NCBI GenBank assembly: GCA_900088475.1
Contig: FLMG01004215.1
Span: forward strand, 1-64,000
Length of the DNA: 64,000 nucleotides
DNA from: Hyphochytrium catenoides
Lineage: Eukaryota; Protista; Hyphochytriomycota
Direction of reading: 5' to 3'
Position numbers and translations under genes: made by a program. The notes below the pieces were generated by a model. The model made no database searches. It saw nothing but the letters and a program-made list of their open reading frames with translations, and was not told the origin of the DNA. Position 1 is the first letter of the stretch. Each line of letters opens with the position of its first letter. Shown here piece by piece: positions 42,613 to 46,057 of the stretch.

Positions 42613-45600
42613 ATGACAAACTTGGAGGTAATGCAGGTTGCAGGCGATCCTGCCTTCATCAAGGCCCAATTTGAAGATCACTACGAAGTAGGAGAGGAGC
42701 TGGGCAGGTAAACGCATCTAGCACGAATCACCTAAGGATCCCTCTAACCCACGTACACTTGGATGAGCAGAGGGGCATTCTCCGTCGTGATCAAGGGTAC
42801 GCACAAGGCAACTAAGGATGAGGTGGCGGTTAAGATCATCAACAAGAACAAGATATCCTTCAATGCTAAGCAAGAGGCGATTATCAAAAATGAGATCGCC
42901 ATCCTTAGAAAGGTCAGAAGAGACTCACTATTCTATTGCCTTGGAGGTAGCCTAAAAGGCTACTACTACATCTGCGCAGATCCAGACCTCTAGTTGTCAT
43001 CCCAACCTTGTCGCTGTCAAGGGCGTGTACGAAGATCAAAACCGTTTCTACATAGTCTTGGAGCTCTTAAGAGGTGGGACCTTCTTCTCGCCTACGGCGA
43101 CCGCACAAGGCTTATTTTTGCATCATTGCATAGGGGGTGAACTTTTCGATCGCATCGTCTCCAAAGGAAGCTACACCGAGAAGGATGCAGCGATTGTAAC
43201 AAGAAAGTTGGTCAATGCCTTGGCCACCCTACATCGCTGCGGTATCCTTCATCGGTCAGTGTTCTAGCGTCTTACAATTTTGCTAACTCCTTCCTTGTCT
43301 TCCCTTTTTCTCACCTTCTCCCTGCCATCTTCCGCTCCTATTATCTCCTCTAGCATTGTCTACCTTTTCCGGTACCTCCTCTAAGACTAAGTTCTAATCA
43401 TGACTTGCACATGTCACAAATCATCTTCACCGCTCCGATCCCTATGGCCGCTAACGCTGTATATAGAGACGTGAAGCCTGAGAACATTCTCTACACCGTA
43501 AGTTATAGTTAGTCACAGCCCTGAGCCGACGACCAAACGCTGTAGTACTCTCTCCTCTCACTCACATCTATTCTTGCTCAGGATGTCTCTGACGATTCCG
43601 ATCTAAAGATCACGGACTTCGGGTTGGCTCTGATCTTCAATAATGAGGCGGGTAACCGGATCGATGTTCATAACTGCGTGGTCGGAACCCCGGGGTAAGC
43701 CTCTATGAGACATAGTCCTTTTTTGCTGATCTCTCACTATATGCTGACGTTCTTGTCTCCTCGATCTATATGTGAACTCCCGGCGCACTTTCGCGGCAGC
43801 TATCTTCCTCCCGAAGCGTTAACGAGGAAGGAATATGGACCTGCTTGTGATGTCTGGAGCATGGGAGTCGTAGTGTACATTTTGCTATGTGGATGTAAGT
43901 TACTAGAGCAAGAGAAGGGTGCTGAATAGGGAGTGCCTAATATACTTCTCTCTCCCTCTCTCTTTCTCTAATTCTTTTTCTTCCTTTCTCCGCTCTCTTA
44001 CTCTATTTCTCTTTTACATCCCCATCTCTCGCGCGCCCATGCGCCCCACGCCCTTTTCCGCTCTCTCCCCCCTTTCACTCTCCCATATGTTCCTGTTGCC
44101 TCCTCCTTGCTACGAACTGCGCCTCTCTGCCAAACTGGCGTACAGACCCTCCCTTTTATGGGGAGTCCAATCATGAGGTAGGAAGTCAAAAACTGCTTTG
44201 CTCAGCCCATGGAGGCGTCACTGAGTATAGATTCCTCTCCGTGCGCTTGGTCTACCGTTTCTCTCCTTTGTTACCTCATGATCTCGCAGCTCTATCAGGA
44301 GATAGTCCGTGGCAAGCTGGTTTTCGAAGAAGACGACTGGAAGGAAATATCTGAGGAGAGCAAGGTAGGTCCGGAGGCAGCTTCAAGCAAAAAGAAAAAA
44401 CATCTCAACTTCTGGTCTCTAACATCACGTTACTGTTAAGGACCTGATCGGAAAGATGCTCACAAAGGACCCGAAGAGGAGAATCACTTGCGATGAGGTG
44501 GGTGCATGCTTCAGTTCCCAGGAAGCTTATATGTCGTTGAATGGAGCCAGAGTTTGCATTTTTCAGATCTTTATACGACATCGCTGAGCTTTTGTCGTGG
44601 ACTCTAGATTTTGAAGCATCCATGGATCGCCAACTGCGAGCAGCAGTCGGCGGTGCCACTAACAGACACCCTGGAGAGGCTCAGAAAGTTCAACGCCAGG
44701 CAGAAATTCAAGGTGGGCTTCTGTCAGTACTCTCCGTCCCTCGGTAAATATAGCAGGACTCACGCTTTGGTTTGTTTATCCTCAACCTTCGCTGCATTAT
44801 GTCTTATCCTCCTGCGGGGCAATCTGTCTTCCAGGCTGCAGCGATGGCGTGTATGATTGGAGCTCGGATGAACGTGCGGAAACTTTTGAAGAAAGCTGTA
44901 GGCGAGGAAGGATGTACGAACTACATTTGCCATTGCGGTTCATGCAGTGACTCATTTATTGGATCACCTTGTGCTTCTACTCTCTCAATGCATTGCCTCG
45001 GCTAGTCACTGAAGACGAGCTGGACAAGCTTCGGAGGACTTTTAACCAGATGGCACCTCAGAACGGAGAGATTGACAGAGACCAGTTTCAGTCGGTTATG
45101 GAAGTAGTTGGTTTCAGGAACAAGGAAAATGCGGAGCAGCTGTTCAATCTCTTTGACGATGACGGCAATGGGAAGGTATGTATGTCACGGCAAGGCTTGA
45201 GCATCGCTAACTTGAGACTACGGAAGGCCGATAAAGTTGGTGCGCATCTGTCATACGGAGAAAGGGACTGGAGGAGAGATTAGACCTTGATTCTGAACGT
45301 CGTGCAATGACTGGCGTTGGAGCTAACGTTAGGCATCTGCTTCTCACAATCCAGATCAACTACCGAGAATTACTTGTGGGTCTAAGAACCTTGCGATCTG
45401 GCGGCGAAAAGGCCTTGAAATGTAAGGACTGGCTTCTTTTGCTCCGATTGTGCCGGGAGCAATGTCACTGACCCTGGGTTCCCTCTATGTGCTTTAATTT
45501 TCCTATAGTCTGCTTCGACGTCTATGATAGAGCCAACAGCGGGTACATACTCAAGGATGATCTAGCTGAGGTTTTGGCTACTGGGCTAGAGGGTGGCTCT

Positions 45601-46057
45601 GGGAGTGTGGAGCCAAACGGTGCGTAGTGTAGGTTCAGAGTGCTGTTGCTTGCTTAGTTGCAGACCTCACTACTACATCCTTGTCATTTAGCTCGCTGCC
45701 TTCTAGTGTTATCTGCAAAATCTTCATTTTCCATTCCTTTCTCCTGGTAAATTAAGCTTTACCTCGGGTTGGACGAAACACTGAGTCCTTTTTGCGCATA
45801 CAGATGACGGAGTGCTACCAAATGAACTAGCCGACCTCTTTGAGGAGCTCGACACGGACAATGACGGGAAAATCTCTTTCGAAGAGTTCAAAGTTGGCGT
45901 GCAAAAACATCCATTCCTTGTCTCAAGGTTCTTGGGCTCGATTCAGATTTCCAAAAGGAGAAAGTGCAACCATCCGGAGTGCCCTTCCTCATGCGACTGC
46001 GGTCCTCCGCAAAAAAGAGGAAAACTGTCTTCAGCCGAGAGCAACAGGACGAGCTAA
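42613..46057 (+). CDS. Ca2+ and Ca2+/calmodulin-dependent kinase, CCaMK-like (kinase + CaM-binding helix + visinin-like EF-hands), multi-exon
   Basis: [64 protein letters not shown]; EF loops [24 protein letters not shown] and [12 protein letters not shown]. Confidence 0.88.

Follow-up and report, generated by a model that had tools for sequence, protein, structure and literature searches.

Plant CCaMK is a kinase of 499-550 aa in which the catalytic domain is followed by a CaMKII-like autoinhibitory and calmodulin-binding segment with an F-N pair, a spacer, and a tail of the visinin type in which the first EF-hand is dead (PMC4672059). Its regulatory region has been described as 'highly similar to animal CaMKII', its binding of calmodulin depends on the invariant F-N pair (LjF321-N322), and the gene is interrupted by six introns with phases 200200 (PMC4672059). 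CCaMK has been said to occur 'only in land plants' (PMC5924475), to have arisen with Mesostigma (PMC5482843) and to be absent from chlorophytes (PMC4672059). Proteins combining a kinase with C-terminal EF-hands occur in oomycetes and diatoms (PMC3019232; bioRxiv 10.1101/2025.08.30.671211), and Chen et al. claimed members of a CDPK/CCaMK clade ('CFK') in SAR, Excavata, Amoebozoa and Opisthokonta (PMC5482843); according to a kinome paper, neither P. infestans nor a diatom has a visinin-like three-EF kinase (PMC3019232). Here we describe a CCaMK-like kinase gene in a stretch of 64,000 nucleotides from Hyphochytrium catenoides (contig FLMG01004215.1, positions 1 to 64,000 of the forward strand; hereafter, the window), a diploid, intron-bearing organism that was isolated from pine pollen and has assemblies of 68-107 Mb (PMC5795050). 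On balance, we favor reading this gene as a kinase-EF fusion of CCaMK-like architecture that was assembled independently or diverged very long ago; we take it neither for a recent acquisition from plants nor for a demonstrated ortholog of DMI3.

The gene model was built from the sequence and occupies positions 42613-46057 of the forward strand, from an ATG at 42613 to a stop codon at 46055-46057. Its 16 exons add up to a coding sequence of 1641 nt and a protein of 546 aa, which is within the size range of plant CCaMK, and the absence of an N-terminal myristoylation signal is a further point of likeness. All 15 introns (60-251 nt; phases 2,0,1,2,0,2,1,0,0,0,0,1,0,1,1) have GT-AG borders, and the gene structure does not match that of plant CCaMK in intron number or phase. 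No paralog of the kinase was found elsewhere in the 64-kb window. The gene had been proposed in a first-pass annotation made from the letters of the window, the coordinates of which are identical to the ATG and stop codon of the rebuilt model; the peptides quoted there all occur in the spliced product, at aa 190-199, 308-325 and 336-362.

The catalytic domain agrees with that expected of a plant CCaMK. The Pfam Pkinase profile matches the successive exons in a colinear manner (profile positions 10-54, 54-80, 83-121, 133-157 and 163-193), and the motifs GRGAFS, VAVK, HRDVKPEN, DFG, GTPGYLPPE and DVWSMG are intact. The segment from DFG to PPE contains no Ser or Thr ahead of the GT in GTPGY, in agreement with the first-pass remark that the activation loop has no Thr. 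CaMKII likewise lacks a phosphosite in this loop, and GTPGY is CaMKI/II-like, by which the protein differs from plant CCaMK. When the exons were compared with PDB one by one, exons 3-4 scored 47 bits with CaMKI-D, 45 bits with CaMKIV, 30 bits with CaMKII and 28-40 bits with CDPKs. Exon 7 matched CaMKI-D and CDPKs (~31-33 bits) and MAPKAPK2 alike, with CaMKIV and CaMKII not separated from them, and exon 2 was uninformative. Exon 6, which encodes the activation loop, had no significant match in PDB, which marks this loop as idiosyncratic. The kinase belongs to the CAMK group, and the exon-level PDB searches give no finer class.

The catalytic domain is followed by a regulatory segment that resembles CaMKII of animals and choanoflagellates. 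The top PDB match of exon 11 is a Salpingoeca-type CaMKII (5ig1; 25.6 bits, 18 identities in 35 residues), ahead of CASK (23 bits), mammalian CaMKII (19-22 bits), CaMKIV (13.4 bits) and the best CDPK, CDPK3 (12.9 bits). In the exon 11 alignment, T306 falls on T286 of CaMKII, with Leu303 in place of the Arg at position -3, and F313-N314-A-R-x-K-x-K falls on the CaMKII motif FNARRKLK. At the level of sequence, therefore, the protein carries the CaMKII-like segment and the F-N pair of plant CCaMK; calmodulin binding is a prediction in its case. Residues 309-343 include 11 Lys or Arg and no Asp or Glu (a charge of +11), no Ser or Thr is present between residues 307 and 347, and equivalents of CaMKII T305/T306 are absent. 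Exon 12 alone gave no match in PDB. The regulatory segment did not stand out by its helical hydrophobic moment, and no amphipathic character is therefore claimed for it. The linker between the FNARxKxK motif and the EF1 loop is 43 residues long, 16 longer than the 27 residues of CDPK3 (9vhu). The CaMKII-like F-N-A-R-x-K-x-K helix and these 16 additional residues make a calmodulin input plausible. The hub (association) domain of CaMKII is not present, as the C-terminal 200 residues are occupied by EF-hands.

Downstream of the kinase, Pfam EF-hand models match in exons 13, 15 and 16, and four EF-hands can be distinguished. The EF1 loop, being one residue short, with Ala first and Gln last, is predicted not to bind Ca2+. 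The EF2 and EF4 loops are canonical, whereas position 3 of EF3 offers no side-chain ligand and this hand falls below all EF-hand cut-offs in Pfam (20.4 bits with EF-hand_6, its best model, against a cut-off of 25; 12.3 bits with EF-hand_1). We thus read the tail as containing two canonical EF-hands (EF2 and EF4), one doubtful hand (EF3) and one dead hand (EF1), while plant CCaMK has three Ca2+-binding EF-hands. The first-pass annotation had counted a degenerate EF1, which agrees with our reading, and three canonical hands, of which EF3 (Ala at position 3, Asp at position 12, sub-threshold) has to be withdrawn.

The arrangement of the EF-hands points to the NCS/visinin family. Exon 13 is in register with residues 20-70 of calcineurin B (25 bits, the higher score) and 23-78 of recoverin, exon 15 has its best PDB match in register with EF3 of yeast NCS-1 (105-127), and the best single-stretch matches of exon 16 are hippocalcin and other NCS proteins, over EF4 and the next helix (150-181). 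The loops of EF2, EF3 and EF4 start at residues 397, 432 and 479 (a spacing of 35/47), compared with 73, 109 and 157 in yeast NCS-1 (1fpw; 36/48) and 428, 464 and 499 in CDPK3 (9vhu; 36/35). Based on the in-register matches to NCS proteins and calcineurin B and on the 35/47 spacing, the layout of the tail is of the visinin/NCS type, not of the calmodulin or CDPK type; an inactive EF1 and a long EF3-EF4 linker are also what characterizes the visinin-recoverin proteins. The PDB scores of the tail exons with NCS-type proteins are modest, and the label 'NCS-type' is drawn from register and spacing, not from a decisive score.

The CDPKs of plants, apicomplexans, ciliates and oomycetes resemble the protein in that one chain joins a CAMK kinase through an autoinhibitory junction to four helix-loop-helix units, and presumably in converting Ca2+ directly into phosphorylation. 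However, the CDPK plan of a ~30-residue junction followed by four EF-hands at calmodulin spacing is not seen here: the junction is CaMKII-like, the linker is extended, EF1 is dead, the spacing between EF3 and EF4 is 47 instead of 35, and the tail is in register with NCS proteins and calcineurin B. The plant symbiosis-type (DMI3-like) CCaMK architecture assigned by the first-pass annotation stands, by the definition in PMC4672059, for the kinase, the CaMKII-like segment with its F-N pair and the visinin-type tail with its inactive EF1; of the other EF-hands, two are clearly canonical and EF3 is doubtful. We do not file the protein as a member of CCaMK: its architecture matches or nearly matches that of the plant kinase, whereas its gene structure does not.

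Relatives were sought exon by exon, and exon 13 (56 aa) proved the most family-specific exon; the joined 546-aa model served for translation and for local BLAST against fetched sequences. A phmmer search of 1.84 billion representatives with exon 13 (E<=0.001) produced 52 matches: one (P0001) is the exon's own open reading frame fragment in a soil relative, and the other 51 are EF-hand proteins of a generic kind. None of the 52 contains a kinase, as local BLAST with the model showed, and at this threshold exon 13 found neither a plant CCaMK nor any kinase-EF fusion, the CDPK-like proteins of oomycetes included. P0001, when used as the query, found only itself. This negative result for a 56-aa query excludes close kinship (roughly >40% identity) and leaves room for distant homology. 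With close kinship excluded, a recent horizontal transfer from plants, one of the origins suggested in the first-pass annotation, is very unlikely; the search gave no detectable sequence tie to plant CCaMK.

Among the proteins found, the one closest to the tail as a whole is P0025, a kinase-less MMETSP protein of 343 aa with 30% identity over 192 aa. Together with P0173, P0174 and P0175, it forms a family of protist proteins from MMETSP, ENA and JGI (248-472 aa; mutual identity 48-54%), which align with the kinase tail at 27-31% identity over 170-190 aa. These proteins share the 11-residue dead EF1 and the long EF3-EF4 linker, and an hhalign comparison of exon 13 with the family gave 97% probability; they differ in lacking a kinase domain and in having unrelated N-terminal regions. 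P0025 as a query toward kinase fusions returned four proteins, none of them with a kinase. A metagenome scan with exon 13 alone gave no match, and a scan with alignment A2 gave only L004, an EF-hand/coiled-coil protein, and no kinase-bearing relative. In the protein atlas, exon 16 matched only generic EF-hand fragment clusters.

Table 1. Features of the kinase locus and of the taxonomic marker gene in the Hyphochytrium catenoides window (positions are those of the window; aa, residues of the 546-aa kinase unless stated otherwise)
Feature	Position	Strand	Remarks
Kinase gene, exons 1-8	42613-42707, 42771-42912, 42980-43073, 43134-43254, 43467-43497, 43582-43694, 43800-43894, 44146-44177	+	Sequence-built model
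Kinase gene, exons 9-16	44290-44364, 44441-44497, 44608-44712, 44835-44913, 45006-45175, 45355-45421, 45509-45619, 45804-46057	+	Sequence-built model
Protein kinase domain, CAMK group	42682-44628	+	aa 24-292; exon-wise Pfam Pkinase matches, colinear
Activation segment, DFG to PPE	43615-43815	+	aa 173-204; split by intron 6; from translation
Regulatory segment, CaMKII-type	44629-44913	+	aa 293-346; split by intron 11; PDB matches of exon 11
Four-EF-hand tail, NCS/visinin type	45006-45949	+	aa 347-511; exons 13-16; in-register PDB matches and spacing
EF1 pseudo-loop	45053-45085	+	aa 363-373; 11 residues (1 short), Ala at position 1, Gln last; HMMER alignment to calcineurin B EF1
EF2 loop	45155-45369	+	aa 397-408; DDDGNGKINYRE; canonical; split by intron 13
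EF3 loop	45526-45561	+	aa 432-443; atypical (Ala3, Asp12)
EF4 loop	45851-45886	+	aa 479-490; canonical; Pfam EF-hand_1, 35.6 bits
Intron 15	45620-45803		Sole intron with direct splicing evidence (contig of run X5)
C-terminal tail and stop codon	45950-46057	+	aa 512-546; unconserved; frameshifted in the soil-metagenome contig; divergence ~5%, intron-like
CCT-zeta chaperonin gene	20556-22175	+	Intronless, full-length, 540 aa (CCT-zeta protein); Pfam Cpn60_TCP1, 564 bits

The CCT-zeta gene, which lies on the same contiguous window and stands without introns in an otherwise intron-rich region, was used as the taxonomic marker for the host. Its best matches are oomycete proteins (73-76% identity), followed by those of ochrophyte algae (70-72%); the plant matches are longer proteins with inflated scores and only 62-64% identity. 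In a maximum-likelihood tree, the protein falls inside the stramenopiles (94/92 against plants and Trichoplax) and outside the oomycete (100/100), ochrophyte (98/98) and Blastocystis clades. The host is therefore a stramenopile outside the oomycetes and not a streptophyte, which distinguishes it from the hosts of plant CCaMK and agrees with the non-plant genome assumed by the first-pass annotation. The surroundings of CCT-zeta in Saprolegnia and Plasmopara contain no syntenic kinase-EF ortholog. Two protein kinase genes in divergent orientation are located 5-9 kb from CCT-zeta in Saprolegnia diclina (JH767166.1; L002 1204-4519); they were rejected as orthologs, given 27-28% identity confined to the C-lobe and no EF-hands.

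The kinase gene is a native, expressed and selectively maintained nuclear gene, as judged from its clean model, the splicing of intron 15, purifying selection relative to a ~96% identical locus, and a GC content equal to that of the host. The splicing evidence is a 269-nt contig of run X5 (labeled as RNA by guess only, 'RNA?'), which agrees with the window at every position but leaves out precisely the 184 nt of intron 15, bordered by GT and AG. The related locus is on a Logan soil-metagenome contig (L001, from SRR28521206), which carries the same gene and its upstream neighbor at ~96% identity. Divergence between the two loci amounts to 2.1% in exons and 4.8% in introns, indels are nearly all intronic, and all 15 GT-AG pairs of the kinase gene are kept. 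Of 36 altered codons, 29 are synonymous, 6 are nonsynonymous and 1 contains a 1-nt deletion. In runs X1 and X2, positions 42500-46200 of the window are represented by two haplotypes, each at about half depth and differing mostly in introns, which fits a diploid, heterozygous organism. The GC content of the kinase exons is 49.5% compared with 49.3% for the window, and GC3 is similar to that of the neighboring CCT gene.

The single-nucleotide deletion in the soil contig affects codon 511 (equivalent to window position ~45947) and puts the last 35 codons out of frame, so that the C-terminal tail is dispensable unless the contig carries an error at this point. From this frameshift and the intron-like divergence of the tail, the conserved protein would effectively end near codon 511. 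The basic KRRK…KRGK stretch of the tail was considered as a nuclear localization signal and rejected, as the tail is frameshifted in the soil contig. The nuclear Ca2+-decoding pathway that the first-pass annotation had read from the gene is thus unsupported, since nothing else in the protein speaks for nuclear targeting.

Three other features of the window were noted. Intron 7 includes a CT-rich low-complexity tract (43900-44110), where the summed contig depth in run X1 rises to ~10,000, compared with 300-400 around it, and many contigs have loose ends; from this depth jump and the loose ends, the tract is a simple repeat dispersed across the genome. On the opposite strand, a large exon at 46998-47828 with EFG_IV, EFG_C and EFL1 domains belongs to a gene for a GTPase of the EF2/EFL1/Snu114 type, which runs toward the kinase gene and converges on its 3' end. 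Also on the minus strand, an open reading frame at 61205-61732 encodes an oxidoreductase FAD-binding domain (FAD_binding_6, E 3e-11); it is probably a single exon belonging to a longer gene for a reductase.

An independent or very ancient origin of the kinase-EF fusion is favored by the outcome of the exon-13 search, by the kinase-less character of the nearest tail relatives, by the presence of 15 introns rather than six, and by the reported absence of such kinases from P. infestans and a diatom (PMC3019232). Among the origins considered in the first-pass annotation, we lean toward a convergent fusion over a deep common origin or an ancient transfer. Domain shuffling around CAMK kinases is common in the pseudofungus lineage, and kinase domain combinations specific to pseudofungi were reported with the Hyphochytrium genome (PMC5795050). 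A parallel is offered by SCAMK of kinetoplastids, a lineage-restricted kinase-EF fusion outside plants that was put forward as a convergent Ca2+ decoder (PMC5924475); SCAMK differs in joining a kinase of the SnRK3 subfamily to a calmodulin-like protein, in its EF module and in belonging to an unrelated supergroup. Several observations weigh against an independent or very ancient fusion. For the catalytic domain, exon-level PDB searches cannot separate CaMKI, CaMKII and CDPK, the summed best scores of which are roughly equal. A profile of the P0025 family compared with PDB placed calmodulin (~50 bits) above calcineurin B, a swamped result that leaves the domain unclassified. RNA support covers 1 of the 15 introns and comes from the run with the guessed label. 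Finally, the junction (…FNARxKxxAAAxA…, KxLKxxVG, EEEL..LR..F) may be nearer to plant CCaMK than to CaMKII, a lead that takes in the stretches RKLRAAAIA and KKLKSLVG and would favor common ancestry. A second lead of this kind is that about a third of the junction and tail residues presumably match lily and Lotus CCaMK in register.

A true homolog of plant CCaMK/DMI3, orthologous or sister to it and endowed with the same dual logic of Ca2+ and Ca2+/calmodulin, would require that the fusion predated the split of the lineages or was received by ancient endosymbiotic or horizontal transfer from a green or streptophyte donor. The shared three-part architecture (PMC4672059), with the F-N pair in a CaMKII-like segment, a long spacer and a tail of the visinin type whose EF1 is dead, speaks for such kinship, as do the CFK-clade members reported in SAR and other non-plant groups (PMC5482843). 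We nevertheless consider it quite improbable, because exon 13 retrieved no plant protein at E<=0.001, the nearest relatives of the tail are protist proteins lacking a kinase, the gene has 15 introns in place of six (PMC4672059), and such kinases are reportedly missing from oomycetes and diatoms (PMC3019232). The activation loop with its CaMKI/II-like GTPGY and the atypical EF3 count in the same direction. In plant CCaMK, the autophosphorylation site T265/T271 is accompanied by a hydrogen-bond network of S237, K264, E313 and R317. In the present protein, the pair D255-D256 presumably stands at this position (Asp256 for T265/T271), suggesting that the phosphosite is absent. Ala presumably replaces S337 (S337/S344), and that site appears to be absent as well, as the lack of Ser and Thr between residues 307 and 347 also suggests; these hallmark residues would also set the protein apart from CCaMK.

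Another reading, which we rate as rather unlikely, makes the protein a divergent member of the known stramenopile/alveolate CDPK family (e.g. PITG_00525, PITG_12271 and PITG_13934 of P. infestans, or the apicomplexan three-EF CDPK-like kinases), with a tail acting purely in cis and no role for calmodulin. Oomycetes and diatoms do have kinases with C-terminal EF-hands (PMC3019232; bioRxiv 10.1101/2025.08.30.671211), exons 4, 7 and 16 count CDPKs among their good matches in PDB, and the CDPK junction is distantly related to the CaMKII regulatory helix. However, the junction exon scores 12.9 bits with the best CDPK and 19-26 bits with CaMKII, the longer linker and the EF3-EF4 spacing depart from CDPK3 (9vhu), EF1 is dead, and exon 13 had no match at E<=0.001 to a kinase-EF protein, whether from oomycetes or elsewhere. 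An artifact, be it contamination by a plant (e.g. pollen), mis-assembly or a decaying pseudogene, is close to refuted. The isolation of the organism from pollen (PMC5795050) and read support for one splice junction only would be in its favor; against it stand the stramenopile CCT-zeta gene on the same contiguous window, the even depth with two haplotypes expected of a diploid host genome, the recovery of the locus with its upstream neighbor in an independent soil metagenome contig, the intact frame with 29 synonymous and 6 nonsynonymous changes, and the host-like GC content. Contamination, a pseudogene and a recent transfer from plants were accordingly rejected on the basis of CCT-zeta linkage, conservation in the soil contig, GC content and the negative exon-13 search.

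In the favored reading, the protein is a single-chain Ca2+ sensor kinase with a CAMK-group domain that needs no phosphorylation of its activation loop. At rest, the regulatory segment would lie in the catalytic cleft, from which it would be released when Ca2+ binds to the EF-hand tail. Release may occur by the tail clamping the basic helix in cis, in the manner of CDPKs, or by Ca2+/calmodulin binding to the CaMKII-like FNAR-K-x-K helix, in the manner of CCaMK, or by both routes. We tentatively put forward, as a possibility somewhat doubtful at present, that a genuine decoder of the CCaMK type arose in this stramenopile or was passed down to it from a deep ancestor, and that a single kinase combines two inputs, free Ca2+ at the visinin-like tail and Ca2+/calmodulin at the CaMKII-like helix.

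If such a decoder were confirmed, the dual-input logic by which plants read Ca2+ oscillations would not be an invention of the green lineage. The three-part CCaMK plan in a free-living pseudofungus would represent either a second, independent coupling of Ca2+ (and possibly calmodulin) to a kinase or a hint that the plan predates plants. Symbiosis-like or nuclear Ca2+ signaling in the host is not implied on present evidence. With either origin, the gene would provide a tractable comparison for the wiring of autoinhibition, EF-hand occupancy and calmodulin binding.

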